Assembly: GCA_035084275.1 (NCBI GenBank)
Contig: CM068779.1
Coordinates: forward strand, 1,488,001-1,552,000
Direction: 5' to 3'
Length of the DNA: 64,000 bases
Origin: Hydrolagus colliei
Taxonomy: Eukaryota
Position 1 is the stretch's first letter, and each line of letters begins with the position of its first letter. Shown here one piece after another: positions 18,801 to 60,844 of this stretch. The position numbers and the translations under genes were made by a program. Under the pieces are notes generated by a model. It had not been told where the DNA came from, ran no database searches, and saw only the letters and a list, made by a program, of their open reading frames with translations.

Positions 18801-21800
18801 TACCATTGAAATTCACAAGGCGGGTTTGATTCCGCAGAACACGAGAGATTAACAGTTGATGCTGAATTAATTAATTGTAAATGTGGATTGACTGATATGT
18901 TGGGGTCTCCTGGTCCATCTAAAATAGATTCATAGGTTGAATAGGTTCAAACACATTCTCTACAGCATTTTATATAACATCAACAGAACCCACCACCATA
19001 GATTTAAAACTACCCATTGTAAACAGTCAGTGCTGTGGCTGTGATTTATCTGCTGGGAGAATCTAAGGTTAAAGCAAATAGGTGTAGAGGTTTGCTTTGA
19101 TAGAAAGACCACTTTGCTTGTAGTTATCAATTTGCCATAACAAAGACCAAAAGTATTGAAATTTGTAACATTAAATCCAGATGCGTTACCAAATTTCAAA
19201 TTGGCTGAATGCTTTCTTGATTAGTAACAAAGTTCCACCCAGGAACGTTTACTCCAGAAAGAGATTTCTCAGTACGTTTCAGTTGTAGATAGAGAATAAA
19301 ATTAAGAAGCTGGTAATTGAAACTGTAATTTCTGTATTTATTACTTTAAGACCTTGTTAACATACCAGCCACATACAGACTGAGAATATAATGGTAATAA
19401 TGATTTGTACTCTTGCAACCACTCACCCTGTAAAAGCTTGATGCTAAGACTAGGTACCCATTTAACACCACTTGACAAAAGATCACATTGTCCTGTTGAA
19501 TAATGGGTTCCAGTTTTACAACATGTCATTGTGATCATTAGTCAGGTATCAATTTATTGCCAACCGTATCTCAATCAAAGTACTGTACAAGTCATGATGA
19601 TTTACTGTATATTCTAACCATTCACCACAAGCAAACCATATAAAATTAAATTTTAGTGTAAGTGTGAGCAGATCTTTTTCCCAATTTAGTCAGGCAGGGT
19701 TGGCAATCAATTGACGAATATTAGAAACCCAAAATAGTGTTTGATCGCGTCACTTACAGTTAACATTGAGTAGATAAGAATCACTTGTCTTTCCATTAAT
19801 TACGTTATACCCAAAACACGTATATCCTCCAGTGTCAGATCTTACAATTCCAGGTAAAGTGAGGGTACTATTGTCATCACTAAGAACCAGCCTTGTGTCA
19901 CTGTGGATAGTTTCATTGTCTTTAAACCACAGATATGAAACAGCAGTGCCTGATGCAGTGCAGGTCAGAGCCACGCTATCATTATGTTCTACCGGAAAAG
20001 TGTCATTGGATAAAATAGTGGGCTTGGAAATTGGATCTAGCAAAACAAGTGTATAATGTTAGAAGACACAAACCACAGTGAATTAGAATGGGACACAATT
20101 GGACTATTCATTCATACATTTAACAACAACCACAACCACAAAATGCCCTTATATACAGTAGCTCCCTCCAAGCAGGCTAGCATCTCAGAGAGTATAATGG
20201 TGGCAGAGTCTGACTCCAAGCCGTAGGATCATTCATTACTCAAGCCGTGGTTTCCATTAACTTTATATAAATAAAATAAACCATGCTTTTATTGTCCAAG
20301 GTGGGTCTTGGGGCAAATGCCTGTTTCAGATCCCAGTAAATACTCTCCCATTTCCCAATTACTAATCTAGGTTCATGTCTTGCCCATGATACGTAATAGA
20401 ATGATCTTCAAATTAGGAGGTTATGGCGAACCTCGTAAAAGGTTAGTTAAGTCTCAGCTGGAGTGTCCAGTCCTGGCCATCACACATTAGGAAGAATGTC
20501 AGGCCTTGGAGAGGATGGAAAGGAGATTTAGCAGGGTAGTGTCAGAATGAGGGACTTCAATAAATGGAAGAGGCTAGATAAGCTAAGGTTATTCTCCTTG
20601 GAACAGAGAAGGTTCAAAGGAGACTCAAATGAGGTGTACAAAATTATGAAGGGACTTGATAGAGTTAACAGGGAGAATCTGTTACCACTGGCTGGTGGGT
20701 TGGTAGTCTGAGGACATAGATTTAAGATGGTTGACAAAAGAACTAAGAGAAGAGATAATTGTTCACACAGCAAATTGTTTGGATTTAGAATACATTGCCT
20801 AAAGAGGAAGCAGATTCAATAACAACTTTCAAAAGATAAGTGTTGATTCACAGATTCACTAGTCTTGTTTTAGGAAATAACATTATGGGATAGAGTACAC
20901 AGGTAGCTTCGGATGTAGGTGCAAGCACCCACTGGGAAGTGATGGAGGGCAAACTAGATGGACTATCTTTTCTCATGTTCTTGTGTTCTTAACACGATAG
21001 ATATTTGGGGAGGACAAATTTGCAGGGAGGGGGACTGATTGGGTAGCTCTTCCAAAGAGCTGGCGCAAGGACAATTAGCTGAATGGCCAGTTTCTGTGGT
21101 GTGATATTCTATGATTGTATCACTTCATATTTTAGTTATTCTATATACAGTATTTGGGTTCCTAAAATCTATACAGCAATAGATTATGTCTGTTCTCACA
21201 CTTTATTCTTACAGTAGCATATCTGTTAAGTAGTAAGTTATATCTCAATTTCTTTTATGAACATCTAACTGGATATGGATATATGCATGATCTGGAAAGT
21301 TCTATCCATCTTCATTTTCGATTTAGAAGTTCTAAGAGAATAGTTTTGCAATTCCAAGTTTTCCCATCAAAACAGGCAGATACTAGCTACTGAAACCCAT
21401 GAATAAAGTCATATAATTCACATAAAATTATGTGTATGTTAACTGTTCCATTTCTGCAAAGCAAAAATAGTTTTTCCTTCAAAATTAGGAATGAAAATGA
21501 CGTAAAAATGTATTGCTATTTAATATATTAGAATTACATACCTATAACTTGGATTTCCCTGGTCGCTTCATTGTACCTTAGTGTTACATTGTTATATGCC
21601 TGACAAGTGTAATTTCCAGTGGCGTTCATAGAAATATTATTAATGGTTATTTCTTGACCATTTTGTTGAAGAGCGACACCACTGTGAAACCACTGAAATT
21701 CAGAGGCTGGATTGGAGTCCGCGGAACACAAGAATTTAACAGTTGTTCCTGAACTGTGTAATGTTTTATCCGGGATGATGGACACATTGGGTAATCCTGG

Positions 21801-24800
21801 TCCATCTAGAACAAACGCACATCATTTGTAATATCACATAAATCACAAGTCTAGAACTATCTAACGTACAGCCCATCACCAGCACTACAAGTCACGATAA
21901 GCCTGAACACCATAACTGTGCAAACAAAAGGAAACAGATATTATAATAAAACGTGTCTGTTGTAATGTGTAGTAACAATAGTTTGTTTAACATATAAAAT
22001 CAATTCTATCCCTTTAAATTCCACTTGGGTCTCAAATGACGCTATTATTTAGCATTTCAGAGCAAGCAGAAATTTGCCCAATTTCTGTAGTTCAATAGAC
22101 ACTATTTAAGAATTTAATTCTATATGCTGTGAAATGGTAATGCAATAGATATGTCAAGACCCAAGGGGAAATATCTCATCCTACATTTTATCTGAGTCCC
22201 AATTTAGTGCTTTAATCAATGTTCATCATTAAACAAATGTTTCAATTATTAATATAGTTAGTGGAGTGAACAAGTGCTTTCATTCTTTTGGTATAAATGA
22301 AAGTTTAGTGATTCAAACAAAATCTGATAGTTTTATGATCATTTAGATTGAAATTCACAATGAAAATAGTTTCATTTCTGAATTTAAACTGGATGTTCTT
22401 TTACCGTTTCATTGTAAAATGTATCATCTCAAATCTTTTGTTAAATATCATCAAATTCAGTGTTTGGTGAAGGATTCGATTATTTGTTCATCTACAATGG
22501 ATAACTAGTGTATAATGCACGCGGAAGCAAATATTGCATAACATTAATCAAGATGATAAGAATAATTTACAGAAATATAACATTGAAGCTGCTTGCTGTG
22601 ACACTTACAGTTGATATCGAGAACATATGGATGGCTGGTACTGTTACTAACAGCATTGTAGACATAGCACGTATAATTCCCACTGTCAGATCTCAAAACT
22701 CCAGCTAAAGTCAGGCTGTTGTCATCCACATTTAGAATAATCCTGTTGTCATAGCTGATATTTTTATTGTCTTTCAACCATTGATATGAAACGTGTGAGC
22801 CTGATGCATTGCACTTCAGCCCCACAGTGTCATTATACTCTACTGGCTGGGTGACATTGGGGGTGACAACAATATTGGAAACAGATTCTGTCAAAACACA
22901 GCACAATATTTATATTATTTGTATTACATTCTGCGTAATATACAACAGCTTATTGGAAACTCAAGTCACTTAAAACATCTGCAACAACAACATGCATTTA
23001 TACAACAACTTTCCTGCAGCGTTGCGTCTCAGTGTTGACACAGTTAGAAACTGAGATGGAGAGAAAATGGAGGTGCACGGTCAAATCGATCTTCGGTGAG
23101 ATTTGAAGATTATTTTCAAAACAACAACTTGCATTTACATAGTGCCCCTCACATGGGGTATTGTCGAAGAGCATTTGGTATAAAGATTAAAGTGGAGGAA
23201 GGTGGAGAGGTTGAGGCTGTGAGCTCCAGGGATTCAGGGTGTAGTGACTGAAGGTGGAACAGTGGAGTCAGGCAATGTGCACAAGGCCTGAGCAAGTCAA
23301 CCAAAAGGGCTGGGAAGAGGTGTGAGGAGTGAGGTGTCAACAAGTTGGATAGGACTTAGGCCATTCAAGTGATTTGCTGATGAAACCTCAGTGATCAGTT
23401 GGTTCCTATGTTCAACAATATGACTCAGTTTTACGTGCAAGGGAAAACACATTCTTGCTTTTCACTCCAACCAAATTTATAATTTCTGAAGTAGAGCATT
23501 TACAATATGATTCTGATGTCAATCTAGAATATTTCATAAAAATATTTTGAACTGGATACTGACTGTCCATATCATCTTTATTAATCGGCGAGAATGCTGA
23601 TTTCCTGCTGTGTTCAGCAACAAATAACAACAACAACATGCATTTAAATAGCACCCTTCACACTGGGTAGAGTGTCCTAGTGCTTAACAACCTGACAAAA
23701 CATGTCTCCGAATCAGAAGGTTGCGGGTTTAAGTCACTTGAGGATCTGAAGTCACATTGTCTAAGATGACACTGCAATGCAGATGAGATGCCATCTGCTT
23801 GTGTAAAGAGAAGGGAGTTCCTCCCAGTGTTCTGGCCAACACTCACCAAATAAAATTAGGTATTAATTTAATGCCTGCTTGGGGGGACATTGCTTTGCTG
23901 TCCACGATTGTGCAATTGTGCTTGCCTCCAAATATACAGTCCCTCCATTTCCTAGGAAATCCTATGAAGCAGTTTCAGGCCCAAAACTCTGGAACACTCA
24001 CTCAATCCCTCCGTCATATCCCCTTGGTCTCCCTTTTCAAGTCCTGTCTGAAAACCTTCCTCTTTGACCGTGCTTTTGGCCACCTCCCACCTTTGACCCC
24101 CTGCTTCTAGTTAGGCTTCGCCACTGTTAAGTACTCTGAGACACTACCATGGTGTAGGGCTGCTAAATACAAGTTGTTGTTATTCTCAAAGCATGCTTCT
24201 GATGTGATAAGGCGCAACACAAAATACAATTATTATTATTACAGCTTAGTTACCATTTTAAATCATTGTGTAGAGGTCATTTCTAAATGTCTTTCAGTGA
24301 TGGTCAGACCAATAACACTGATGTTGCTTTTGTTTGATACTAAAATGTCCTGAATTAACTGCAGGACGAGGCTGATATTTTGTATTATTAATATTCCCAG
24401 TAGCACTGAAGATTATACGAACTGTTTGTTTTACATTGTTATACACACATCCGCATTTGATTTGTAGACTAATATGGTTCTTGATTGTTTTTCCTCATTC
24501 CTAATTTGTTACATTGTAATCACTTGGCGCACATCAACAATACTAATTTATTAAACTGTATACTAAATATATTATACATATTGCACTAGTCTTCATGCCT
24601 GCACTGACTGATCCCATCCATTCTGTAATTCAGTAATTTGGAAAGTTTTTAAAAATGCGTCTGCAATTGCTTTCCTGATTTCTCAAACCCAAATACTGTA
24701 TATACTTTTTTTTGTCAGACTGACATTTAAACTCCAGCAGTTACCCTCAACCCACACCCTTGGGTTCTGATGCCTTGGCTCTTGCCATCCTGTGCCTAAT

Positions 24801-26533
24801 ACTCTCAGGAATTAGGAAAACAGGATGTATCCAACCAGTGAGAGAGTGTGCATTCCATTCCAATACATGATTCTCAGACAGGGAAAAACCACAGAGCAGT
24901 TTTCTTACTCTATACACAAACACATTTGTTTAACCAGCAGTAAGTAGGAGCCCAGTTGTAAATTGAACGGCAGATCACTTTTTTGGAAGTAATAATCTCT
25001 CCAATAAATAAATAATAATTTGATCACTGTTTGTGGGACGCTGCTGTGCACAATTGGCTACCGTATTTCTCCCACAAAATATCATTACACTTTATTTGAA
25101 GCACATTGAGACGTTTTGAAGACATGATAAGGTGATATATCAAATGGAAGTTTTGGAAATGGAAGCTAACAAATATACAGTCAATTTTCCGACTCTTCTT
25201 CATGCTGCCCCGACCCGTCCCCCCTTGCTCTTGTCCCTACTTAACTGTCCAGCGCCTTGGGACGTCCTCTCGACATGAAAGGCACTATATAAATGTACAT
25301 TTTGATTGATTGATTGATTGATTGATTATTATAATTGATTCCATACTGTTGATAATCATCTGGGAAAAGTTCACATTGGTAGAAATTGTTTGTTATAAAT
25401 TGTAGCCACTGTTGACAGATGACACTGTTTGAAAATAGAAAGAAATTTATCCTAGCGCCCAAACAACAATCCCACAAATAAAATTGGTGACTTGATTCAG
25501 GCTGTTTGTTGGTTATCCATGCATTCAAAGTGGCGTGAACGGCATTTCTACAGGGTTAGCGTGAGTGGTGCAAAGTAGATTTAGAATAATTCATATAAAG
25601 AGCACTTCACATGGGATAGGGTTTCGGAACATTTAACAATGGGAAGACTGACGCTCAACCGGGGGAGGGAGGAGGTGACATGTGCCTATGAAACTATATT
25701 CCAGCAGACAGGACAGCGGGGAGAAAATAAGGTAACACATACTGTGTATCTATGTGGCAGAAATATTATTTCTCTACTTCAAGCAGCTGAATGACATGAA
25801 AATGAACCATCAGATCGTGAGCATCTCGTCCATTATCTGGATATAAAACATTTTGTGTGAAGATATCCATTTTCATTTTCACCCAGATTTCTCCCTGAAC
25901 GTGGTACAGTTAACAACAAATACCCTGGGACATGAATGGCACATAGATAGGTTATTGTCAGTGTAACTGTTACTTACCCAGCACTTTCAGGACGATTGAC
26001 ACTGATTTTGAATTTCCAGTGACTGGGGTCAAATTCAAGATATAAGTTCCATTGTCGGCAGTTGTCACTGATTTCAGGTGGAGAGACACGTCTGGGAGGA
26101 ATATCTCAGCCCGGTCTCGGTAATCAGGTTTGACAGATACCCCCAGTTCGACCCACAAAAGTACTTGCTTGGCGCCAAAACTCCAGGTCCCACTCTCCAC
26201 CTCCCCAGACACTGTCACTTTAAACTCAACTGTATCTCCGACAGCTGCTGTAATGGTGTCTGGTACAGTGACGGTGATTTCTGCTGTAACTGGAGAGAGA
26301 GAAAATCCCATCAAGGACTGCGAGGCATCACTGAATACATATCTACACAGTTCGTCCTGGCTGACGCCCTCTCTCTCTCTCTCTCTATTGTAGGGACGTG
26401 GTCAGCAAGTTCTCCCTGTCTCTATCGTTAAACATTTACAATAAACTCCCAACTGAGAGCAGGTGAGAAAGTGAGACTCACCCGCACATACACAGCAGCA
26501 AAGAGCAACTACCCCGAGCAGTGCTGTCTGCAT
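685..26533 (-). CDS. Gene 1: CEACAM-like inhibitory-type Ig receptor (L-N-A1-B1-A2-B2-A3-B3-A4-B4-TM-ITSM tail), spliced CDS 2928 nt, ~975 aa
   Basis: join(26533-26482,26289-25978,22887-22609,21805-21542,20036-19758,18918-18655,16860-16582,15912-15649,11826-11551,11461-11201,8333-8207,4772-4717,4450-4394,2118-2078,801-685). All junctions are GT-AG and phases are compatible; I saw no in-frame stop in the joined exons. Cys-less IgV, alternating A/B C2 exons (279 nt A exons) and an LSGGAIAGIVI TM are CEACAM-family hallmarks. Confidence 0.85.
1325..1745 (+). mobile_element. L2 3' fragment
   Basis: [16 protein letters not shown] similarity to the L2 RT C-terminus; decayed tail. Confidence 0.8.
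2078..2118 (-). CDS. Gene 1 cytoplasmic exon (S)PQQSSRGANTATA, 41 nt, phase 1-0
   Basis: Acceptor tttttttgtcttccag, donor gtaaga; phases fit both neighbours. Confidence 0.75.
4394..4450 (-). CDS. Gene 1 cytoplasmic exon (I)PPSQTEYATVQRKEQNPQ, 57 nt, phase 1-1, ITSM
   Basis: Acceptor ttttccgacacag, donor gtaagt; TEYATV matches TxYxxV/I. Confidence 0.85.
4717..4772 (-). CDS. Gene 1 cytoplasmic exon (R)EKSGSNHQNGVTMDATGN, 56 nt, phase 2-1
   Basis: Acceptor cattcatttag, donor gtaagt; bridges the TM exon (phase 2) and the ITSM exon (phase 1). Confidence 0.8.
5950..6295 (-). mobile_element. tRNA-head / L2-tail SINE
   Basis: A/B-box head, cctgtttacc..agtaa core, gaagcg(g/c)tttgagacgtc tail. Confidence 0.75.
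6887..6977 (-). CDS. Candidate alternative terminal exon of gene 1 (R)ERKSNIQKKNDQENQVYFSRDRTIENQAC*
   Basis: Acceptor cctatcatatcag in phase 2, 29 codons then TGA; AATAAA on minus strand at 6838-6833. Confidence 0.45.
8207..8333 (-). CDS. Gene 1 transmembrane exon DSPQGKDPNRLSGGAIAGIVIACIVVVALIVALAVWFVKGKGR
   Basis: Acceptor tattttacag, donor gtaaat, 127 nt phase 1-2; hydrophobic helix followed by basic stop-transfer residues. Confidence 0.9.
8695..9130 (-). mobile_element. L2 3' fragment
   Basis: Reverse-strand L2 3' end and caacaacaa tail. Confidence 0.7.
11201..11461 (-). CDS. Gene 1 IgC2 B4 exon (261 nt)
   Basis: GPDVP..C..W..DVGIYTC; acceptor ttctgttgcag, donor gtgagt; phase 1-1. Confidence 0.92.
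11551..11826 (-). CDS. Gene 1 IgC2 A4 exon (276 nt)
   Basis: C..W..DVGTYRC; GT-AG; 89-nt intron to B4. Confidence 0.92.
14121..14220 (-). pseudogene. 3' remnant of a B-type IgC2 exon ([32 protein letters not shown])
   Basis: Similar to the 3' halves of B1/B2/B3; 5' half missing and an L2 3' fragment (~14240-14450) abuts it. Confidence 0.75.
14950..15295 (+). mobile_element. tRNA-head / L2-tail SINE
   Basis: gctcagtggttagagcactcgcctc head; gtgggacactgctgt..aattggctgcc core; attatt tail. Related copies at ~1200, 9480, 9885, 12780, 18035, 39020. Confidence 0.78.
15649..15912 (-). CDS. Gene 1 IgC2 B3 exon (264 nt)
   Basis: GPEDP..LSC..WYCN..TGNYTC; acceptor ctattttag, donor gtatgt. Confidence 0.9.
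16582..16860 (-). CDS. Gene 1 IgC2 A3 exon (279 nt)
   Basis: LTC..WFKD..DIGEYMC; GT-AG, phase 1-1. Confidence 0.92.
17130..17365 (-). mobile_element. DeuSINE-like fragment (related copy ~37880-38050)
   Basis: Reverse-strand tRNA head ggacttgaacctacaatcttc and conserved body. Confidence 0.6.
17365..17700 (-). mobile_element. tRNA-head / L2-tail SINE
   Basis: Well-preserved reverse copy with ggattcgaa B box. Confidence 0.8.
18655..18918 (-). CDS. Gene 1 IgC2 B2 exon (264 nt; not in ORF track, no ATG)
   Basis: [52 protein letters not shown]; acceptor ctattttag, donor gtacgt. Confidence 0.9.
19758..20036 (-). CDS. Gene 1 IgC2 A2 exon (279 nt)
   Basis: LTC..WFKD..DTGGYTC; GT-AG. Confidence 0.92.
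20405..21115 (+). mobile_element. Decayed CR1 3' fragment (copy ~41370-42080)
   Basis: CR1-like RT C-terminus (cacattaggaagaatgtc..gaggtgtacaaaattatga) and 3' end. Confidence 0.75.
21542..21805 (-). CDS. Gene 1 IgC2 B1 exon (264 nt)
   Basis: YGPGLP..FLC..WFH..TGNYTC; GT-AG. Confidence 0.92.
22609..22887 (-). CDS. Gene 1 IgC2 A1 exon (279 nt)
   Basis: LKC..WLKD..DSGNYTC; GT-AG. Confidence 0.92.
25978..26289 (-). CDS. Gene 1 IgV-like N domain exon (312 nt), no cysteines
   Basis: W in C strand, DNGTY F-strand motif, both canonical Cys absent; acceptor ttttctctctctccag, donor gtaagt. Confidence 0.92.
26482..26533 (-). CDS. Gene 1 leader exon [17 protein letters not shown]
   Basis: ATG at 26533, hydrophobic signal peptide, donor gtgagt phase 1. 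Confidence 0.88.
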
Positions 26534-26541
26534 CCTGGCCT

Positions 26542-26670
26542 CAGCCTGTGTCCTGGTCTCTGGTCACTGAGCAGCCTGTGTCCTGGTCTCTGGTCACTGA
26601 GCAGCCTGTGTCCTGGTCTCTGGTCACTGAGCAGCCTGTGTCCTGGTCTCTGGTCACTGAGCAGCCTGTG
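26542..26670. repeat. 30-bp tandem repeat x4.3 (cagcctgtgtcctggtctctggtcactgag) just upstream of gene 1 ATG
   Basis: Four perfect units plus a 9-nt partial; paralogue at 47499-47627 has one substitution. Confidence 0.95.
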
Positions 26671-26730
26671 CTGGTTACACTCAGTCAGTCAGTAGAGTTT
26701 TCTCTTCTCCCAGCTCTGCACTTATTGAGC

Positions 26731-26741
26731 AAATAGGAAGT
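26731..26741 (+). promoter_or_regulatory. Candidate ETS/PU.1-type site (aaataggaagt) ~200 bp upstream of ATG; copy at 47688-47698
   Basis: Motif match and position only. Confidence 0.3.
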
Positions 26742-27404
26742 AGGGAGTGGGTGGGGACTGACTGCAGTGTGGTTCCTGGCCAGTGATATCAAATGTCTCG
26801 GGTATTTCAAGTCAGAACAGGGTTTGCACAAAGCCCAGGAGCCTGGACACTGTGACCTGTTAGACAGTAACAAGGCAGCAGTTTGGATCTCTGTTCAGCT
26901 TGTTTTAAAGTTAGTTTCTAAAATATAAAATACATTTAATAAACATGATGTTAATCCTTTATTTGATACAGTCCCTGATCCCATCTTTGAAAAGCTTCAC
27001 AGGATCTACTGTAAAGTATAGTAGTGTCTGTTTGTTTTGTGGCGAAACACTAAACCCAGCAGCCAATTGGGCACAGCAGTGTCCCACACACAGGCAAAGT
27101 CATGGTAACTATTGCACTTGATACACAGCCTTTCCTGTCAGGAGAACATTTCAAACTGCTTCACAGGATTTTTTACAGTAAATTATAGAATGTGGCAGGC
27201 GATGTAGGCACAGTGACACACACTGGCATGAAGTGTACAACCATAACGCTGAACAACAAAAACATTACATTTGTATATTGCCTTTCACGGTGGGAGAACA
27301 GCCCAAGATGAATGACAGCTCCCTGACTGACCAACAAACGGCTTAATGTCATTATTCAACACAGGGTTAGAAATCAAATGTGAGTCACTGTTTACCTGTT
27401 TACT

Positions 27405-27690
27405 GTCCTGTAGCTCAGTGGTGAGAGCACTCACCTTACAAGCAAGAGACTAGGTTTGATTCCCGGCAGGTCACAACAAAATCTTGGGCAAGTTTCCTTT
27501 CTCGACATGTCTAATAATAATCCCTCAAAAAAAATTGTCATTTTCAATCCACGACTGTTTGTGGGACACTGCTGCGTACAATTGGTTGCCACCCACAAAT
27601 ATACAGTCAATTCTCTTTACAGTTAATTCTGTGAAGCGCATTGAGACGTCTAGAAGACGTGAAAAGCACTATATCCCATGCAGGATGATT
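27405..27690 (+). mobile_element. tRNA-head / L2-tail SINE (copy ~48380-48665)
   Basis: tagctcagtggtgagagcactc head, family core and tail. Confidence 0.78.
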
Positions 27691-27889
27691 ATTATGATGA
27701 AGCTTTGTGTGATCTTACACTGTGTAACAGCCCCACAGTCTGGCAGATCAGTGCTATTACACAATAATAATAATAATAATCCTTGCATTTGATATCGCCC
27801 TTTTCACATCTTATCAATGTTATGCAAATGCCCTGCTGGTCGGTCTTCCTAATTCTTCCCTCCACAGGCTACAGATAATCTAGAATATT

Positions 27890-28390
27890 GTGTCCTTTAC
27901 CGTTCCAAACTCCATGACCCCATCTTCCCCATCCTCACCTGTCTCCATTGGCTCTCCATCATTCAGAAGATCCGATTCAAGATACTGGTGTTCACATTTA
28001 AAGCCCTTCACAACCTCACCCCACCCTACATCCGTGACCTCCTATCCCCTTACCAACCTGCCCGCCCCCTCCGCTCAGCAGGCTCTGGCCTGTTCCAAGT
28101 CTTCTGACCCACACGCCACACAAGTGGCCACTCTCTCCGTCACTCTGCCTTCAACGTCTGGAACTCCATCCCGCAGTCACTCCGCCTCGTTCCCTCCCTG
28201 GCCTCCTTCAAGTCTCGCCTCAAGACTCTCCTCTTCGATGGACCCATCGCAACTCTTAATCCCCCTTCCCTCCCCCACCCACCCCCCTGGCCTCAGCTCG
28301 GGTCTGATGCAGTAACTGTCCAGAGCCTTGGGACGTCCTTCTGACGTGAAAGACGCTATACAAGTATAATTTTGTTGTTTTGTTGTATAT
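27890..28390 (+). mobile_element. L2 3' fragment (copy ~48860-49360)
   Basis: LHWLSIIQKIRFKILVFTFKAL; gggacgtcc..gtgaaag tail. Confidence 0.85.
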
Positions 28391-28659
28391 TCTGTAAAGC
28401 GCTACCGGACGGTTCAAAGAAGAGAAAAACGCTTTATCCAATGCAAGGATTATTGTTATTGTATTCTGTGAAGCGCTGAGACGTACCAAGATATGGTAAG
28501 GTGTTATATCAAATGCTCCAATTATCATTCATCATTTTCCAGCTCTTCTACAATGAAACAACCAGTGATTTCAGCCATTTTAATTCTGTAGCCTGATTAT
28601 TGATACAATATAAAAATACTAAATGACATTTACAGCGTCTTTTACATCTGGAAGACAAC

Positions 28660-29340
28660 CACAACAAAATTACATTGATACATGTTGGAAGGACGTCCCA
28701 AGGTGCTGCACAGTTAGGGATTTGGATCCGAGCTGAGGATCAGGAGGGGTGGAGGGCAGTGAGGTTGGAGGATGGAAGGTGACCGAAGGCATGGTTAAAG
28801 AGAGGGTCTTAATTCTGGACTTGAAAGAGGCAAGGGAGAGGGTGAGGACAAGGTCAGTGTCTGTAGAGCAGAGGAACGGACATGTAGGTGAAGCTTTAAT
28901 AGGTGGCAAAGGTAGTGAGGAAGAAGGCCATGGATAGCTTTAAAGAGAGTTCTCATAGTCAAGCCTGGATTTAATGAAAGCGTGAATAAGGGTTTCAGCA
29001 CCTGAGGGCAGAGACAGTGGTGAAGGTGGGCAATGTTGTGGAGGTGGGGCAAGGCAGGATGGGTCATGGCACAGATGTAGAGTTTAAAGTACAGTTGAGG
29101 GTTGAACAAGACACCAAGGCTCAGTGACGGAGAGAGTAGATCCATGGATAGTGATCACTGGCAGCGCCTGAGGTGAGGAAGTGCTGATGGGAGCCAAGCA
29201 AGAGGTCCTCGGTCTTGTTGACGTTCAATTGGAGAAAGTCAGCTCTCAGCCAGGACTTGATGTCTGACAGACAATCCATCAGGACAGCAGTGATCCTGGA
29301 GTCGAGGCTGGGGGCAGAGAGATAGAGTTGACCACAGGCC
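28660..29340 (-). mobile_element. L2 fragment (copy ~49630-50310)
   Basis: Reverse-strand L2 RT C-terminal similarity and tail. Confidence 0.8.
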
Positions 29341-29508
29341 TGTGGATGATATCACACAGCAGGACACCACATTAGAATTACGCTGCCAGAGTTCATGAAC
29401 ACAGAGAAACACTGGGTGATACAAGCTGCCAGACTTGTTGGGGAGATGAATAAGCCGCACATCAGCACTTCGCATCTCCAGTCCTCGCACAGTCAGCCAT
29501 TCAGCCAA

Positions 29509-29568
29509 TTATCCAGCCATTTTGCCTCTCAGGTCACTGTACAGGGACTGATCGTGTGGCTGTAAAGT
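29509..29568 (-). CDS. Gene 2 terminal exon [19 protein letters not shown] (ITAM second half)
   Basis: Acceptor ctcttcctgtcttctctggacag, phase 0, TAA at 29511-29509. Confidence 0.85.
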   Translation of the reverse strand, partial: TLQPHDQSLYSDLRGKMAG

Positions 29569-47490: not shown

Positions 47491-47498
47491 CCTGGCCT

Positions 47499-47627
47499 CA
47501 GCCTGTGTCCTGGTCTCTGGTCACTGAGCAGCCTGTGTCCTGGTCTCTGGTCACTGAGCAGCCTGTGTCCTGATCTCTGGTCACTGAGCAGCCTGTGTCC
47601 TGGTCTCTGGTCACTGAGCAGCCTGTG
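47499..47627. repeat. 30-bp tandem repeat x4.3 upstream of gene 2 ATG
   Basis: Duplicate of 26542-26670. Confidence 0.95.
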
Positions 47628-50480
47628 CTGGTTACACTCAGTCAGTCAGTAGAGTTTTCTCTTCTCCCAGCTCTGCACTTATTGAGCAAATAGGAAGTAG
47701 GGAGTGGGTGGGGACTGACTGCAGTGTGGTTCCTGGCCAGTGATATCAAATGTCTCGGGTATTTCAAGTCAGAACAGGGTTTGCACAAAGCCCAGGAGCC
47801 TGGACACTGTGACCTGTTAGACAGTAACAAGGCAGCAGTTTGGATCTCTGTTCAGCTTGTTTTAAAGTTAGTTTCTAAAATATAAAATACATTTAATAAA
47901 CATGATGTTAATCCTTTATTTGATACAGTCCCTGATCCCATCTTTGAAAAGCTTCACAGGATCTACTGTAAAGTATAGTAGTGTCTGTTTGTTTTGTGGC
48001 GAAACACTAAACCCAGCAGCCAATTGGGCACAGCAGTGTCCCACACACAGGCAAAGTCATGGTAACTATTGCACTTGATACACAGCCTTTCCTGTCAGGA
48101 GAACATTTCAAACTGCTTCACAGGAGTTTTTTACAGTAAATTATAGAATGTGGCAGGCGATCTGGGCACAGTGACACACACTGGCATGAAGTGTACAACC
48201 ATAACCCTGAACAACAAAAACATTACATTTGTATATTGCCTTTCACGGTGGGAGAACAGACCAAGGTGAAGTGAATGACAGCTCCCTGACTGACCAACAA
48301 ACGGCTTAATGTCATTATTCAACACAGAAACTACAGGGTTAGAAATCAAATGTGAGTCACTGTTTACCTGTTTACTGTCCTGTAGCTCAGTGGTGAGAGC
48401 ACTCACCTTACAAGCAAGAGACTAGGTTTGATTCCCGGCAGGTCACAATAAAATCTTGGGCAAGTTTCCTTTCTCGACATGTCTAATAATAATCCCTCAA
48501 AAAAAATTGTCATTTTCAATCCACGACTGTTTGTGGGACACTGCTGCGTACAATTGGTTGCCACCCACAAATATACAGTCAATTCTCTTTACAGTTAATT
48601 CTGTGAAGCGCATTGAGACGTCTAGAAGACGTGAAAAGCACTATATCCCATGCAGGATGATTATTATGATGAAGCTTTGTGTGATCTTACACTGTGTAAC
48701 AGCCCCACAGTCTGGCAGATCAGTGCTATTACACAATAATAATAATAATAATCCTTGCATTTGATATCGCCCTTTTCACATCTTATCAACGTTATGCAAA
48801 TGCCCTGCTGGTCGGTCTTCCCAATTCTTCCCTCCACAGGCTACAGATAATCTAGAATATTGTGTCCTTTACCGTTCCAAACTCCATGACCCCATCTTCC
48901 CCATCCTCACCTGTCTCCATTGGCTCTCCATCATTCAGAAGATCCGATTCAAGATACTGGTGTTCACATTTAAAGCCCTTCACAACCTCACCCCACCCTA
49001 CATCCGTGACCTCCTATCCCCTTACCAACCTGCCCGCCCCCTCCGCTCAGCAGGCTCTGGCCTGTTCCAAGTCTTCTGACCCACACGCCACACAAGTGGC
49101 CACTCTCTCCGTCACTCTGCCTTCAACGTCTGGAACTCCATCCCGCAGTCACTCCGCCTCGTTCCCTCCCTGGCCTCCTTCAAGTCTCGCCTCAAGACTC
49201 TCCTCTTCGATGGACCCATCGCAACTCTTAATCCCCCTTCCCTCCCCCACCCACCCCCCTGGCCTCAGCTCGGGTCTGATGCAGTAACTGTCCAGAGCCT
49301 TGGGACGTCCTTCTGACGTGAAAGACGCTATACAAGTATAATTTTGTTGTTTTGTTGTATATTCTGTAAAGCGCTACCGGACGGTTCAAAGAAGAGAAAA
49401 ACGCTTTATCCAATGCAAGGATTATTGTTATTGTATTCTGTGAAGCGCTGAGACGTACCAAGATATGGTAAGGTGTTATATCAAATGCTCCAATTATCAT
49501 TCATCATTTTCCAGCTCTTCTACAATGAAACAACCAGTGATTTCAGCCATTTTAATTCTGTAGCCTGATTATTGATACAATATAAAAATACTAAATGACA
49601 TTTACAGCGTCTTTTACATCTGGAAGACAACCACAACAAAATTACATTGATACATGTTGGAAGGACGTCCCAAGGTGCTGCACAGTTAGGGATTTGGATC
49701 CGAGCTGAGGATCAGGAGGGGTGGAGGGCAGTGAGGTTGGAGGATGGAAGGTGACCGAAGGCATGGTTAAAGAGAGGGTCTTAATTCTGGACTTGAAAGA
49801 GGCAAGGGAGAGGGTGAGGACAAGGTCAGTGTCTGTAGAGCAGAGGAACGGACATGTAGGTGAAGCTTTAATAGGTGGCAAAGGTAGTGAGGAAGAAGGC
49901 CATGGATAGCTTTAAAGAGAGTTCTCATAGTCAAGCCTGGATTTAATGAAAGCGTGAATAAGGGTTTCAGCACCTGAGGGCAGAGACAGTGGTGAAGGTG
50001 GGCAATGTTGTGGAGGTGGGGCAAGGCAGGATGGGTCATGGCACAGATGTAGAGTTTAAAGTACAGTTGAGGGTTGAACAAGACACCAAGGCTCAGTGAC
50101 GGAGAGAGTAGATCCATGGATAGTGATCACTGGCAGCGCCTGAGGTGAGGAAGTGCTGATGGGAGCCAAGCAAGAGGTCCTCGGTCTTGTTGACGTTCAA
50201 TTGGAGAAAGTCAGCTCTCAGCCAGGACTTGATGTCTGACAGACAATCCATCAGGACAGCAGTGATCCTGGAGTCGAGGCTGGGGGCAGAGAGATAGAGT
50301 TGACCACAGGCCTGTGGATGATATCACACAGCAGGACACCACATTAGAATTACGCTGCCAGAGTTCATGAACACAGAGAAACACTGGGTGATACAAGCTG
50401 CCAGACTTGTTGGGGAGATGAATAAGCCGCACATCAGCACTTCGCATCTCCAGTCCTCGCACAGTCAGCCATTCAGCCAA

Positions 50481-53400
50481 TTATCCAGCCATTTTGCCTC
50501 TCAGGTCACTGTACAGGGACTGATCGTGTGGCTGTAAAGTCTGTCCAGAGAAGACAGGAAGAGAGTGTCACTAGTGTCACAGGGTGTAACAGTTATCTGA
50601 GGGTAAATAATAATAATAATCCTGGCATTTGACGCAGCGCCTTATCATATTGGTAAACAGTTAAAGTGCTTCACAGGAAATACTGTCAAGTGTAGTGACT
50701 GTGTGTTTAGTGGGGGAAATGCAGCAACAATTGAGAAAAGCGATGCACTAACAAACAGCAGTGGATTGAGTGACCAAAATATGTATATATTATTTAAGGC
50801 ATTGTTACCCCCAGAAAGTGATCCACCAATCGACCCCCAAGCAGTTTCTTTGTTACTGCTGGTAAACAGAGGTGTGTGAGTGTGAGTGCATCTGTTTCTG
50901 TCTGTGTGTGTTTTTATGGAATAAGAAAACTTCCCTAAGGTTTCGCCCTGACCTGTAGCACCAGGGAATCGAACCCAGGTCTTCTCGTTTGTGAAGCGAG
51001 TGCTCTAAGTACTGAACTGCGAGTGCTCTAACCACTGGGCTACAGAACACCACCAGTGTCCCAAGGTGTGGCAGTTATCTGGGGGACAATAGAAATCAAG
51101 GAGCCTGGTGTAGAGAGTGTGACGGAGTGACTGTCAGCAGCATGTATACAGTGAGCAACATAGACACACAGCTGACCCCTCTGTGGGCAGCAGATCTCAG
51201 CAGAGGGTTGGCAGAGGTCTGGAGGAGGGCACTTTGCCATCCTGGCCACTAATACATGGTGCGGGGCTTAGGACAGAGGCTACAAGAGGATGTTTGGCTT
51301 CCCACACAATAAAATATTAATTATCTCTCACCGTGTAGGTGGCATTGGGATCAGAGGCCTCAGTGCGTTCCTGTGTAAGAAAGTGAGACAGTCAATATAG
51401 ACAAGCAGTAGATAGGAAGAGTTGTGCTGAAGGCACAGAGAGCAACATTAACCTGACTTTGTATTTCACATCTGATTAACAACATCATCATAGATTGTGG
51501 TGACAGCACAGAACTGTGTCTGCGTCTGTGCTGGTGCTCGCTCCCCCACTGGAGCTCTCTACTCTAACCCCATTCCCTGTTGTGTTCTATCATGTCTGTT
51601 CTGGTGCTCTCTGAGACAGTATCTTAATGAAGGGCGCTATATAAATACACATTATTATTGCTGTGCTGTGTTTGAAGCTAGACTGACACATCAGAGGAGT
51701 ACTGAGGGAGACAGCAATGTCCATACATTATACAGTAAACATCTGTCTGCCTGTTGTGATGGTTCATGTGGAATGATATAGAACATACAACAAACACACA
51801 CCATTTAGTCCAACATGTTCATGGAGGTGTTTATATTCCAGCTGTGCCCCACCCCTGCTGTGATCCCCTCTCCTACTCTCTATTCCCTTCTCCCTCATCC
51901 ATCCAATATGGTTCAACTTAATAACAACAACAAATGTCAGTTACACAGTCTCTTTCATGTCAGGAGGAATGTCCTAAGATACTGTCCTAAGACAGTCTGG
52001 GATCTGCACTCGAGCTGGGGATTGGGATCAGGAGGGAGTGGGGGGCAGGGAGAGTCGGGGTAGGAGGGTGACCAAGGGCGGGATTGCTTGAAGAGCAGGT
52101 AATTGAGACAGCTCTTGAGAAGGAGGCGAGGGAGACTGAGGGATACAGTTCCAGAGGGTGGTGGCAGAGACGCTAAAGGCCTGTCTGTCTACGGTGTGGC
52201 GGGTGAGGCAGGACACATGAAGCAGGCTAGAGCTCTCTGAGGACGGCGTGCACAGTTTCTAGGGGGTTAGGAAATCACAGAGACCAAGGTGAAGAACAGG
52301 AACTTGAACTTTAATTTGCTGATGCTTCTTACATCAACCACATCAACTTCCTCGTTCTCTCGTCCCCCTGTGTCCAGCGGTTCCTCCTAATCTCCCTCAC
52401 TATCTGGCTTTGATGTCCTGTGGCTCAGTGGTTAGAGCACTCTCCTCGCAAGTGACAGAACCTGGGTTCGCTTCGTGGCCAGGGTGAAATGTTAGGGAAG
52501 ATTCACACATGCGCACACACACGTGCACACACACACAGGCCTCTGTTTTCTTAACAGTGGGTAAGAGCCAGGTTCTTAGTCGATTGGAGGACTAATTTCA
52601 GGACTAATCTGTTCAAAAAACTATTTGGTCACTGAACCCACTTCTGTTCGTGGGATGCTGTTGCTCGCAATTGGTTGCTGTGTTTCACCTAAAATATATA
52701 CAGTGAATTTCCTTACAGTATATCCTGTGAAGCGCTTTCAGACATCTAAAAGATGTTATAAGGAACAGGATTATTATTATCGAGGTTCCTCTTAAAACTG
52801 CTAAAACTTTTCACTTCGACTACAGTTTCCTCATTCTCTCTGCCCTCTATGTAAACAAGTTCCCCCTAAACACCCTTATGATCTGCTATCTCAATATATC
52901 TCTCAACATCCACCTTATTGAATTTTGCACAGTTTTTAACTCCTCTATCAGAGTTCACACTCCTGGTTCTCATCTTGAAATCCCTGCTCACCCCCATAAC
53001 AATAATAATCCTTGTCATTGATATAGAACCTTATCATGTTGTTAAGACATCTCAGCACTTCATAGGAAATACTGTAAAGTGTAGTGACTGTGACAGCCAA
53101 TTGCACACAGCAGGGCCCCACAAATCGTCCTAGATTGAGAGACAAATTATTATTTTAAAAAGTCATTACTACCCCTGGAAAAGCAATCCACCATTTCACT
53201 AACAACAACAACAAAATTACACCTTGTATACGTCACAAGGCACAAATGTGTTCCTACTTACTGCTGGTGAACAGAGCACTTGTGTGTGCATGTCTCTGTG
53301 AGGAAACGTGCCTAAGGTTTCGCCCTGACCTGCCTGGGTATCGAACCCACTTGTGAGGCAAGTGCTCTAATCACTGAGCTACAGGATCCACAAACAGAGC

Positions 53401-56400
53401 CAGAAGGCGAGTGAGTGAGAGACATGCGGAGAAGCTGTAGAGGTCTGGATCTTGTCAGGAGAAGAATAGCACTAACCTGGGGCCTGGCTGAGAATGAAAC
53501 ATTCTCATAGGTCACTGCTGAGCTCTGAGCAGTTGGGGTGGAGCTTTCTGCAGGAAGATTGGGGAGAATGGGAGCAGGGTTAGGAGGAGAATTCATTCCT
53601 CTTACAATTGTGTTTATCATTAATATTACTGTAATAGTCCTTTAACAAACGGGAGGCAGGAACTTACCGGCTTGTTTTCTCAGAGACAGACGTCTTTTAT
53701 AGACGAATAATGACATTATAGCGATTAGAATTAGGATTAGAATCACAGCCACTGGCACACCAACACTAATCCCCAAATCGACGGCCACACTGGGATTGTT
53801 TACGTGATCTGTTTAGTGAGGAAATTATTTGATATAAATGAGTATGTGGGAAGACACTCAATTATCAGCTTTTTCTGCTTTAGTTTAAATAAAACATGGA
53901 AATCAGGGAAGATATAATATATATAATACAGTACAACTTTACATTGGTACAGTTCCAGCTCTAGTCTTCACATCATGCTCAACAGTACAGGCTGGGAACC
54001 CGAGTTGCGCGTGTGAGGTGAGAGGTGTGAGGATGGGAAAGATCATTGAAAGCCAGACAGAGAGATAGGACTTCAGACAAAAGCTTGAATGAGCTAAGGG
54101 AGGGAACAAGTGGCAGTTACAGAGATGGGGCCAAAACGGCTGAACGACCATCAGACATTGGGGGGGGGGATGGACTTTTTCCCAGTGGGTGTCCTCCTTG
54201 ACCTGTCTGCTGCGTTCGACACAGTCGATCACACCATCCTCCTCCAACGTCTTTCCTCAACCTTCAAGGCACAGTCCTTGACTGGTTCCATTCCTACCTG
54301 ACCCACCGTTTACACTTTGTATCTTCCAATGGTTTTTCCTCAAACCCCCGCACAGTTTCTCACGGCGTCCCTCAGGGCTCTGTCCTCGGCTCCCTCCTTT
54401 TCACCATTTATACGCTCCCTCTGGGCGATGTCATCCGCAAACATGGGGTAAATTTCCACATGTATGCGGACGACACCCAGCTGTACCTTTCTGCCTCATC
54501 CCTCAACCCCCAGACCATCGATGTTCTGACAGCATGTCTGTCCGACATCGAGTCCTGGACGAGTGAAAACTTCCTGCAATTGAACGTGAGTAAGACCGAG
54601 GCCCTCCTGATCGGCTCAAGCCAGCGCCTCCGCACATCGGGCGCTGCCAGCCTCAACATGCAAGGCTGTACTCTCCACCTCACAAAGCCAGTCAGGAACC
54701 TCGGCATCATGTTCGACCAAAAACTCTCCTTCCTCCCCCACATCCGTGCCTTGACCGGCACCGCTTACTTCCACCTGCGCAACATTGCCAGGCTCCGCAA
54801 TTATCTTACCCCCCACGCTGCTGAAACACTCATGCACGCGTACATCACCTCAAGGCTGAACTACGGAAACTCTCTCCTCGTCGGCCTCCCCAGTTCCTCC
54901 AATCACAGGCTTCAGGTCATCCAAAACTCTGCTGCCCGTGTATTATCCCGCACCCGCCTCCGCGACCATATAACCCCCATCCTCGCCCATCTCCATTGGC
55001 TCCCCATCCTCCAGAGGATCGAGTTCAAGATCCTCGTCCTCACCTTCAAGGTCTTACATGGCCTTGCCCCGCCCTATTTAACCAATTTACTCTCCCCCTA
55101 CAAGCCCACCCGGACCCTCCGTTCAGCAGGACTTGGCCTGCTCCAAGCCCCCCGCCCGAACCGCCCCACCATTGGAGGCCGGGCCTTCAGTTTTTCTGCT
55201 CCGACCCTGTGGAATTCCATCCCCCAATCCCTCCGTCTCGTTTCTTCTCTTTCCTCTTTCAAGGCCGGTTTGAAGACTTTCCTCTTCGACCGTGACTTTT
55301 CTTCCACCCCGAATTTTTCGACCTCCCCTATGTGTTTCACCCCTCCCCGTACACTCCCCTCCCAGCTCGGGTCACACGCCTCCTGTGCAGCGCCTTGGGA
55401 TGTTCTCCCGACGTGAAAGGCGCTTTACAAGTGTAATTTGTTGTTGTGTTGTTGTTGTTGTCTGACATATGAGAAACCATCACAGTGATTAAGAGGCACC
55501 AAACCAAGCACATAATCCACCTACACATAGAAATCCCAGAGATAGATATTGGAATGGATTGCACACCCTCTCTCTCTCTCTCTGGAGGGACTGCTGATTC
55601 CAGGAAGTATTAGGCGCTGGTTGGCGAGAGTCAAGGCTTGAGGGGAGCACACATTGTGCATTATGGTAACTGCTGGAGTCTAACCAGCTAAACTTGTGGT
55701 TTCCAACCTTTTTTTTTGCTGCGACCCAAATTAGCCACCAACAGGTCCTTCCGACTCTTAGGGTGCAACATCGCGACCGAAGTGAAGCTCAGCCAAGACG
55801 ATATCTCTGTCTCTTTTGTGGACTCAGCGCAACTCGTAAGTATGGTCTTTCATAGAAATTGGACGGTGGTGTCGCCACGGACACTTTTCAGCACTAAAAA
55901 AGCATTGTCAGCGTTTAAAAAACAACAAAAAATTTCTAATGATCCTTCATGACCCTGATTTGGATTGGGACCCGAGGTTGGGAACCACTGAGCTAAACCC
56001 ACATAGCTTGCCATTGATATCTCTGTCTGGCAAGATTTCAGTGCCTCGGGACATCCTCCTTACGTGAAAAGCATTCTCTCACTGTAATATTTTTGTTGTT
56101 GTTGTTTCCCGCCGCTGCTCCAGCTAGGACCACCCTACACATTAGGACTTTGACTTGCAGGATTAACAGCAGCTGAGTGGGAAGATTCCCTTCCACCAGT
56201 GACTGGTCTGTTCAACCAAGGCCTGCTGGTGAGCCAGGCTGGGCTGTGCTGCCATCAGCAGAGAGAGCTCTGCAATACAAAACACCTGGCTCAGGAACTG
56301 GCACAGACGTCTGGCTCGATTCTCATATTCTGCTGCCAAAACATGTCACCTTGAGGCCTTTTCAGTTTACGATATGATACAAGATGTGAAAGAGCTCAAA

Positions 56401-57422
56401 TCAAGGCGAGTTTCTCCTGAGACCCCACACCCAGACCAAGTTTGGAAGCCACCCCAGTGGCTTCCAAACTTGAAATACAGACGCCTGCCCTGACTCAGCT
56501 AAATTTTTGTTGCTCCCCCCCCCCCCACTCCACCTTCACATTGAATAATTTTTGCAAATGATAACAGCAAATTCAATATTTTCTTTACCTGTGTTATTAA
56601 ATATCAACAAAAAACATTAATTTGTTAGAACACTAACAAATTCACAGTTTGGAAACCACTGGTATACACTATAAATAACTTATTGATAAACTGGTGAGTT
56701 AATGCAGATATCACCTCAGTGATTTGTCATTTACAAGATCAGGCTGTTCAAGGTACAAAGCCAAGAGCTGAGGGAACAGTGCAGTACATCACTCACCCTT
56801 TAACATGACATTCAGTGTTGTCTCTTTGTCTCTTAAGGTAACGCTGTTATGAGCTTGACAAGTGTAAATCCCAAGATTAGTCTGGGTTATTTTATCAATG
56901 GTGAACTTTGGAGTTGTGTGTGACAAAATAGTGCCATTAAATCTCCATTTATACTGAGCTTCTGGGTGTGACGGAGCAGAACAAGACAATGTAACAGTGT
57001 CTCCAAGTTCTGCTGGGTGTGTCCCAGCGATTGTCAGCTCAGGGACGTCTGGTCCATCTGCAACAGAAGCAAGAATGGCTTCTTTATTACCAGTGAACGT
57101 AAAGCATAACATTGAAGTCTTATTGTGAGAGGTGGCTGATAATTACAGGCAATGTTCAGTGTATGGCTGCCAGACTGAGAGCTAAGGGTGTTCCTTGCCT
57201 CACACCGATACGTTCCAACATCCTTCCTAGTCACATTGATGATGGTCAGGGTGTCATTATCCACAGCGATTGTGATCCTGTCACTGCTGTGGAGAGCTTG
57301 CTCACCTTTAAACCACAACTGGGACTCAACAGTGCCAGTGACAGCACATGCCATAGTCACAGTGTCAGTGTATTCTATTGGTTTGGGATTGTTAGCTGTT
57401 ATGGTGACACTGGTGATTTTTT
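50481..57422 (-). CDS. Gene 3, 3' part: A-B-TM-YENV-ITAM; leader and N exon not in window
   Basis: join(57422-57147,57057-56797,53808-53668,53547-53477,51370-51332,50540-50481); TM and tail match gene 2; A-exon donor is gtaatt. Confidence 0.78.
54185..55460 (+). mobile_element. Duplicate of the L2 LINE at 33215-34490
   Basis: Identical 318-aa ORF 54460-55416. Confidence 0.93.
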
Positions 57423-57499
57423 CTGTAAATAGAATGATAATAGAATCATACAATTATTAACCAATTGTTATCCTGAACTAGGGAAATTCACTCTCAGGT

Positions 57500-60435: not shown

Positions 60436-60844
60436 GATTCCATCCCTGATCCCCTCCTCTTCAATCTCTATATGGTACCACAAGGTGATGTCATCCACAG
60501 ATATAATCAGCTTCCATTCTCAAAAAGCAATTTGCCAAAGTCTAACAAGCGAGGGTTCCTATTTACTGCAAGGTAAAAAGAAGTGTGTGGAGTAAGGAAA
60601 CTTGCCCAATGTTACACCCTGTCGGGAATCGAACATGGTTCACTTGACATCCAAGAGAAAATACATTTTGCTTTTCATCCTAACCAAATGTGTACGTTCT
60701 GCAGTACAGCATTTATAATATAATTCTGGTGTCAATCTAGAATATTCCAGGACAGTATTTTTAACTGGATACTCACTGTCCATATCATCTTCATTAATTG
60801 GCAAGCATGCTATCAATAACTTTTCTGCTGTGTTCACCAACATA

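Follow-up and report, generated by a model that had tools for sequence, protein, structure and literature searches.

Paired inhibitory and activating receptors are thought to arise repeatedly under pathogen pressure, and the rearrangement that founded such a pair is rarely still readable. In the CEACAM family of mammals, Xenopus and reptiles, gene conversion maintains the likeness within pairs of receptors that signal through immunoreceptor tyrosine-based inhibitory motifs (ITIMs) and activation motifs (ITAMs) (PMC2832619, PMC2110893, PMC5112662, PMC13278318, PMC11646289). Known pairs are human CEACAM1-CEACAM3, dog CEACAM1-CEACAM28, cattle CEACAM1-CEACAM33/35 and those of Xenopus, crocodilians and turtles (PMC2832619, PMC2110893, PMC7042247, PMC5112662, PMC13278318), and the studies describing them note the presence of CEACAMs in cartilaginous fish, with no analysis of pairs there. 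Here, we describe a locus in the cartilaginous fish Hydrolagus colliei (assembly GCA_035084275.1, contig CM068779.1, positions 1,488,001 to 1,552,000 of the forward strand; this whole stretch of 64,000 nucleotides is called the window) in which a CEACAM-type gene, gene B, combines the head of one neighbour, gene A, with the ITAM-bearing end of the other, gene C. We consider it probable that gene B was created as a chimera by a tandem segmental duplication out of register with the gene boundaries and that the two copies were later partly re-homogenised by conversion.

The locus resembles the CEACAM1/ITAM pairs in belonging to the same family, in having genes with ITIMs or switch motifs (ITSMs) and genes with ITAMs in one cluster with very similar ligand-binding ectodomains, in a likeness that is renewed by conversion and in non-synonymous changes that gather on the CC'FG face of the N domain. 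It differs from them in its host, a cartilaginous fish, and in orientation, which is tandem here and usually opposite in the published pairs. Moreover, homogenisation here extends over about 10 kb (5' flank, leader, five immunoglobulin [Ig] exons and introns) in place of the N exon only; among the head exons that are shared, N has the lowest similarity, and the founding rearrangement is directly legible in the sequence. Cattle CEACAM32 is a CEACAM1 paralogue that arose by duplication and has a different transmembrane (TM) exon, described as an 'escape from concerted evolution', in which conversion was kept in the leader and introns and excluded from the Ig exons (PMC7042247). The N block at this locus, diverged by 2.4% between flanks at 0.2 to 0.5%, is similar to that case, but only the N region escapes here, A1 to B2 being identical, and the new tail is of the ITAM type and was already in use in the neighbouring gene. 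Outside the family, Siglec-5/-14 and Siglec-11/-16 are likewise paralogues in tandem whose 5' parts are homogenised and whose 3' parts signal in opposite ways (PMC4042635, PMC5701461). With hybrid Ig-receptor genes in general, the locus shares intronic recombination between exons of symmetric phase, which yields in-frame chimeras. The KIR hybrid genes are further examples of paired or hybrid receptors made by recombination. Unlike the Siglec and KIR hybrids, which are attributed to homologous recombination or conversion, the joints here are without extended homology and contain an inserted fragment.

The duplicated unit and the chimeric gene

The window contains no undetermined base (N) and has a G+C content of about 42%. 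Its single dominant direct repeat pairs 17753-36997 with 38720-57937 (98.4% identity over 19,293 columns at an offset of 20,967 bp in a self-BLASTN search), a match that chance cannot produce. A more sensitive search and colinear alignment of the flanks extended the homology leftward to 17098 and 37845, interrupted by two copy-specific repeats, which gives copy 1 an extent of 17098-36997 and copy 2 an extent of 37845-57937. An interspersed repeat at 17307-17712 is present only in copy 1, is absent at 38052-38075 of copy 2, and has further copies at about 9.9, 10.9, 15.2 and 27.5 kb; the flank alignment also identified a repeat resembling the tail of a long interspersed nuclear element (LINE) at 38121-38719, present only in copy 2.

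The unit combines, on the minus strand, part of one gene (exons B2, A2, B1, A1 and N, leader and 5' flank) with the last exons of the gene upstream of it, namely the A4-B4 pair of Ig exons, TM and ITAM. Copy 1 holds the head and 5' flank of gene A and the A4, B4, TM and ITAM exons of gene B, and copy 2 holds the head and 5' flank of gene B and the corresponding 3' exons of gene C. Read in gene orientation, the window consists of repeat-rich DNA, copy 2 (A4, B4, TM, ITAM, intergenic DNA, leader, N, A1, B1, A2, B2), a junction insert, copy 1 and, finally, A3, B3 and the rest of gene A down to its ITSM tail. CEACAM-type genes and repeats are the only contents of the window, in which no flanking marker gene is present.

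The gene models were built from stop-to-stop open reading frames and inspection of splice sites, and all coding exons lie on the minus strand. Every Ig exon stands after AG and before GT in phase 1, with exon lengths of 276 to 279 nt for the A type and 261 to 264 nt for the B type. Gene B runs from 47490 to 29509 and encodes 765 residues: leader (47490-47439), N (47246-46935), A1 (43853-43575), B1 (42771-42508), A2 (41003-40725), B2 (39886-39623), A4 (36467-36192), B4 (36102-35842), TM (32838-32698) and three cytoplasmic exons (32577-32507, 30398-30360 and 29568-29509). Its reading frame is uninterrupted across 12 exons, and all 22 splice sites (AG/GT) are intact. The head of gene B is that of gene A, and no base differs between genes B and C in the TM and three cytoplasmic exons. 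Since all Ig exons are phase-1 cassettes, the junction-spanning gene reads through in frame, with a peptide that ends ...ATIGILVI on the B2 side and continues EKITSVNIT... on the A4 side.

Gene A extends from 26533 to 685 and encodes 975 residues. Its head consists of the leader (26533-26482), N (an IgV exon, 26289-25978), A1 (22887-22609), B1 (21805-21542), A2 (20036-19758) and B2 (18918-18655); these are followed by A3 (16860-16582), B3 (15912-15649), A4 (11826-11551), B4 (11461-11201), TM (8333-8207) and four cytoplasmic exons (4772-4717, 4450-4394, 2118-2078 and 801-685). Gene C is represented by its 3' part only (57422 to 50481), with A4 (57422-57147), B4 (57057-56797), TM (53808-53668) and cytoplasmic exons at 53547-53477, 51370-51332 and 50540-50481. 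A TBLASTN search found no Ig exon in 57445-64000, and the head of gene C lies outside the window. The A3 and B3 exons of gene A (15649-16860, minus strand) stand just outside the unit and stem from an older 3-kb internal duplication of A2-B2, with 84 to 89% identity; at 11 to 16% divergence from A2-B2, they predate the unit. Gene B is without A3-B3 because the breakpoint lies upstream of them.

The earlier note on this DNA had proposed a tandem duplication out of register with the gene boundaries, and the self-BLASTN search, flank alignment and gene models bear this out. The interval it gave, 18900-56436, lies inside the true extent of 17098-57937 and is 1.5 to 1.8 kb short at each end. It described the content of the unit correctly as B2 to N, leader and promoter of one gene plus the TM/ITAM end of the gene upstream, to which the A4-B4 pair has to be added. 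Likewise, the middle gene does consist of the promoter region, leader, N and A1-B2 exons of the ITSM-type gene followed by an A4-B4-TM-ITAM 3' half, and its ITAM tail is, as had been claimed, the one also used by the third gene. The same note held that the direction of copying cannot be fixed; it can be in part. One ancestral unit gives genes C and A, and duplicating this unit necessarily creates gene B, so that the junction-spanning gene is the derived one.

The founding event would have been a tandem segmental duplication of about 19.9 kb, with its first breakpoint at 17098 in the B2-A3 intron of the ITSM-tailed, CEACAM1-like gene A and its second at 57937, inside a repeat that lies upstream of A4 in gene C, the ITAM-tailed neighbour. 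The two copies would have been joined via an 847-bp piece of old B1-exon/intron type, and gene B would read through from the gene A 5' flank, leader, N, A1, B1, A2 and B2 into A4, B4, TM and the ITAM tail. Later, each copy would have gained its own repeat, and conversion would have re-homogenised most of the interior to 0.07 to 0.5%, with the N exon and the intron downstream of it staying at 2.4%. Genes A and B would then form an inhibitory and activating pair under the same proximal promoter whose ligand-binding faces are drifting or being driven apart, as the tail motifs and the known CEACAM pairs lead us to infer. The 5' flanks of the two copies are 99.5% identical, which makes shared proximal regulation of genes A and B plausible. 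Directly 5' of the start codon, both genes carry a tandem array of 4.3 copies of the 30-bp unit CAGCCTGTGTCCTGGTCTCTGGTCACTGAG (26542-26670 in gene A and 47499-47627 in gene B), perfect in copy 1 and with 97% matches in copy 2; the array may lie within the 5' untranslated region or the promoter.

Breakpoints, age and probable later conversion

The two copies are separated by an 847-bp junction insert (36998-37844) made up of the final 72 bp of a B1-type exon (37771-37841) and an intron of the B1-to-A2 type. The exon fragment encodes 23 codons that are protein-identical to B1. At the nucleotide level, the insert is 86.5% identical to 21129-21613 and 76% identical to 20329-20647, both in gene A and with corresponding parts in gene B, and no match at the roughly 95% expected of a fresh copy was found anywhere in the window. 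With this divergence, it does not qualify as a recent duplicate of any sequence there. It might be a templated insertion from another paralogue, made during a replicative template-switching duplication; alternatively, the unit might first have begun inside gene C's own B1 exon, with copy 1 later losing a repeat-rich part of the intron. The region 57938-64000 was found to contain repeats, satellite and LINE fragments only, with no second copy of the insert and no head of gene C. Orphan 3' fragments of B-type Ig exons stand inside introns at two places, 14122-14196 in the B3-A4 intron of gene A and 37771-37841 in the insert, and appear to be relics of earlier gain and loss of exon pairs.

Both breakpoints are sharp. 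On the right, copy 1 ends at 36997 inside a repeat (36541-36997) that in copy 2 continues to 58006 and has an inverted copy at 58933-59459, and homology stops within 0 to 4 nt at 36997/36998. On the left, homology between the copies begins at 17098 and 37845, 3 nt from the end of the B1-type exon fragment, and it likewise stops within 0 to 4 nt at 37841/37845. Sequence possibly shared at the two joints amounts to at most 2 to 4 nt, and the extended homology between recombining partners that is expected under non-allelic homologous recombination is not seen at either breakpoint. These sharp edges with 2 to 4 shared nucleotides make a homologous unequal crossover unlikely and suggest that the founding mechanism was end-joining or replicative template switching, or else that a larger unit later lost part of an intron. 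The unequal crossover or long conversion that had been put forward as the origin does not agree with two sharp breakpoints flanking an old insert of B1-exon/intron type. The repeat that is cut by the right breakpoint forms an inverted pair just outside copy 2 (57496-58006 and 58933-59459, 90.7% identical and about 0.9 kb apart), which could represent a single element bounded by long terminal inverted repeats.

The divergence between the copies is strongly heterogeneous (chi-square of 495, 37 degrees of freedom, p of about 2e-81) and not uniform and low as for a simple recent duplication. The left edge (17753-18700) is diverged by 4.93% and the right edge (35301-36997) by 4.54%. Between them lie a block at 0.23% that covers the A1 to B2 region (18701-24300), a block at 2.36% with the N exon and the N-to-A1 intron (24301-26300), a block at 0.51% with the leader and 5' flank (26301-28250) and a block at 0.07% with the ITAM, cytoplasmic and TM exons and their introns (28251-35300). 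Polarised against the older A3-B3 paralogue, the left edge has derived states distributed 12:10 between the copies. This split speaks for accumulated age, and import from the A3-B3 paralogue as the source of the roughly 5% divergence was ruled out on its account. The age of the duplication is that of the edges and the private repeat insertions, about 5% divergence, which at commonly assumed vertebrate neutral rates would correspond to tens of millions of years, the rate itself being uncertain. Later gene conversion best accounts for the near-identity of the interior. The event had also been described as caught while minting a decoy receptor, a picture that does not hold with edges diverged by 4.9% and 4.5%, changes spread over both copies, private repeat insertions in each and an interior that is a mosaic. 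The decoy role named there is a candidate function at most, and N has the highest divergence among the shared head exons.

An independent sign of conversion in the cluster comes, by sequence comparison, from the A4-B4 tract. In gene A this tract covers 11182-11866 on the minus strand (685 bp including a 90-bp intron), with partners at 35824-36507 and 56779-57462, and it is about 97% identical in genes A, B and C, with flanks that cannot be aligned. Its site patterns are star-like: A and B agree against C at 16 sites, A and C against B at 16, and B and C against A at 5. The B4 exon of gene B carries 12 private changes within 143 bp (35876-36018), a patch that looks like import from an unseen paralogue or strong selection.

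Family membership, signalling tails and the N domain

The closest database relatives of these genes are shark and ray proteins named 'CEACAM5-like', some of them CEACAM1-like, at 46 to 49% identity (Heterodontus 47 to 49%, Pristiophorus 48%, Heptranchias and Carcharodon 46%), and no database protein above 49% identity was found. The best solved structures are CEA (1e07, E = 2.7e-79), CEACAM1 (9gh5, E = 6e-41) and CEACAM6, with which the conserved motifs ...NV.YGPD.P.IS... and ...SNPPA.Y.W... are shared. Pfam finds one V-set domain (E = 7e-25) and six Ig domains in gene B. The IgC2 domains alternate between A type and B type with one phase-1 exon each, similar to bona fide CEACAMs, and the translated N exon is without cysteine, as in the N domains of CEACAMs, which are IgV-like without the canonical intradomain disulfide. 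An AlphaFold model of the N domain has an IgV fold with a predicted local distance difference test score of 94.7. Searched alone, the N domain gives only weak generic V-set matches among solved structures and, with Foldseek, generic IgV folds (TIGIT, nectin, CD48), and it is by itself no proof of CEACAM membership. Judged by sequence and exon structure, the locus is part of a cartilaginous-fish CEACAM cluster in which three genes follow one another head to tail, all on the minus strand.

Genes A and B are linked and have near-identical ectodomains and opposite signalling tails, as paired receptors do. Such receptors also bind the same ligands and are co-expressed on the same cells, to which the 99.5% identical 5' flank is the one pointer at this locus. 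The tail of gene A, which ends ...REKSGSNHQNGVTMDATGNIPPSQTEYATVQRKEQNPQSPQQSSRGANTATANRDHEIVYAQPQLLQGRPTAPMTEIVDNKTDYAELKFK before the stop codon, contains the ITSM TEYATV (SQTEYATV; consensus TxYxx[VI]) and TDYAEL (KTDYAELKFK) and is homologous to the long tails of sharks (TEYA[AT]V, VYAQP, TDYAELKF), with 54 to 59% identity over the last exon. It is through the ITSM that gene A qualifies as an ITIM/ITSM-type gene, and its designation as inhibitory is a prediction from motif and homology only. The sequence LDYQNV (5136-5258), considered as an ITIM exon of gene A, was dropped in favour of the exons homologous to shark tails. A 56-nt cytoplasmic exon (4717-4772) starts the long tail of gene A, and the shark homologues have short isoforms (...SRTGAI, ...RASAI) beside long ones, which suggests that the gene A locus may have a splice switch between long and short tails. 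Such a switch is found in mammalian CEACAM1.

The tail of gene B is unrelated to that of gene A and contains an ITAM, YTTL-x7-YSDL, in agreement with the consensus Yxx[LI]-x6-8-Yxx[LI]. It is encoded by two minus-strand exons (30398-30360, ending in ...DPNATYT, and 29568-29509) that are identical to the pair at 51370-51332 and 50540-50481 in gene C. This tail is homologous to those of Mustelus P0043 (YMEL-x7-YNEL) and Pristis P0082 (YMGL-x7-YSDL). A different ending of the gene B and gene C tails through an ITIM/ITSM-like candidate exon (30497-30586) was rejected, as it has no good acceptor and the homology to the Mustelus and Pristis tails favours the two exons given above.

The N exon (25978-26289 in gene A and 46935-47246 in gene B, minus strand) is the most diverged of the shared head exons. 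It differs between the genes at 13 of 312 nucleotides, compared with none in A1, B1 and A2 and two in B2, and at the protein level the N domains are 91% identical and the A1-B2 domains 100%. Ten of the changes are non-synonymous and three synonymous (dN of 0.045, dS of 0.038, the rates per non-synonymous and synonymous site). The nine amino acid changes are D18E, S36R, K40N, Q41E, L44V, I83N, N85R, T87I and N92S; with strands C, C' and F at 30-37, 40-46 and 80-88 in the AlphaFold model, eight of them lie in these strands or in the FG loop (binomial p of 3e-4 to 2e-3, with the regions defined post hoc). Positions 85 and 87 can be aligned to the F strand of human CEACAM1, where we take them to correspond to Q89 and I91, residues with a central role in homophilic binding and in the binding of adhesins. 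The raised divergence of the N block extends to 26307, 18 bp upstream of the N acceptor, and recently converted DNA lies on both sides of the block. In Xenopus pairs, non-synonymous changes accrue rapidly on the CC'C''FG face after conversion (PMC5112662), and the N block at this locus matches that pattern.

In the shark Mustelus asterias, the ITAM-tailed P0043 and the short-tailed P0045 are 90% identical, with A and B domains at 99 to 100% and divergent B4 and TM, which suggests that this mode of pairing recurs in sharks. At this locus (OZ172909.1, 5869250-5950343), the annotated P0043 gene spans 61 kb and joins A4 of one A4-B4 pair to B4 of a second, with exons at 10174-18484, 45401-46109 and 60492-63696 of the locus. 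This may be a similar rearrangement or a mis-joined model; the annotated model of P0043 is not secure, and its domain architecture was not relied on.

Alternative explanations and significance

Several points weigh against a chimera made by out-of-register duplication and later conversion. The copy number and the junction are known from an assembled sequence and gene B from genomic sequence alone, and a complete ancestral ITAM gene is assumed, as the head of gene C lies outside the window. The block at 0.07% is, at 7 kb, long for one conversion tract, and the origin of the 847-bp insert is left with two readings. With 13 changes, the dN/dS ratio of 1.2 in the N exon does not distinguish positive selection from a relaxation of constraint. 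Finally, no strict ITIM ([ILVS]xYxx[ILV]) is found in gene A, which has TEYATV and TDYAEL instead.

The explanation that competes best accepts the duplication and regards gene B as a functionless by-product, unexpressed or mis-spliced and kept intact-looking by conversion. Most of the coding sequence of gene B lies in recently homogenised blocks, and its intactness thereby carries little weight; the N, A4 and B4 exons have dN/dS ratios of about 1 or more, and a B1 exon remnant sits inside the long B2-A4 intron. However, the exons and splice sites are all intact although the A4-B4 region is 4.5% diverged, the amino acid changes in N are concentrated on one sheet and not scattered, and ITAM-tailed CEACAMs are conserved in shark and ray. 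We consider it unlikely that gene B is without function.

Alternatively, there was no out-of-register duplication, and genes A, B and C are old whole-gene duplicates in which very long conversions homogenised 20 kb across a gene boundary. Conversion is indeed active in this cluster, and concerted evolution is known from CEACAM paralogues (PMC7042247, PMC5112662). However, the flanks outside the unit have no older colinear homology: to the left of 17098 comes the A3 exon of gene A and to the left of 37845 a B1-type remnant, and the sequences to the right of 36997 and of 57937 are unrelated. Both edges are sharp and have the same divergence of about 5%, as from one duplication, and at the right edge a repeat is truncated whose counterpart in the other copy is intact. 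Conversion between old genes as the whole explanation thus appears improbable, more so than a functionless gene B.

The least probable explanation, and in our view a very improbable one, is an assembly artefact in which two haplotypes of one unit were laid in tandem: stretches at 0.07% beside others at about 5% could resemble the patchy heterozygosity of an immune locus, and the evidence for the duplication is an assembly, but no gap separates the copies, each copy has a private repeat insertion, the sequences to the left of the two copies are not allelic to each other, the junction gives an intact in-frame gene, the Mustelus pair of an ITAM-tailed and a short-tailed gene has the same pattern of near-identical ectodomains, and the insert matches neither flank at allelic identity (its best matches, 86% and 76%, are to a different intron), which in itself makes two haplotypes unlikely.

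With the out-of-register duplication as the preferred explanation, the locus is an older, partly re-homogenised case of the known route to paired receptors through duplication, recombination and concerted evolution. The breakpoints, the in-frame logic of phase-1 Ig exons and later concerted evolution, including a distinct N-exon block, are all visible in one sequence. If confirmed, the pair would extend CEACAM receptor pairs to cartilaginous fish and provide a concrete locus for asking whether the ITAM partner is a decoy or has a different specificity. A bolder view, tentative and on balance doubtful, is that this is the earliest-branching vertebrate lineage with a documented CEACAM pair, made in one step by a segmental duplication that joined a copied promoter and five Ig exons to an ITAM tail already in existence, and that selection has since kept conversion out of N, so that the CC'FG faces differ. 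If true, the locus would document an arms race, driven by pathogens, at the base of the jawed vertebrates.

Some features of the repeat content accompany these genes. A LINE reverse-transcriptase fragment, open over 404 amino acids, lies on the plus strand in the B4-TM intron of both copies (33232-34443 and 54202-55413; Pfam RVT_1, E = 3e-15), and a LINE endonuclease fragment at 63587-64000, also on the plus strand, runs off the right end of the window. A satellite-like degenerate array occupies 59919-60435, with units of 16, 24 or 40 bp, and is rich in GAGACACAGAGAAAC.

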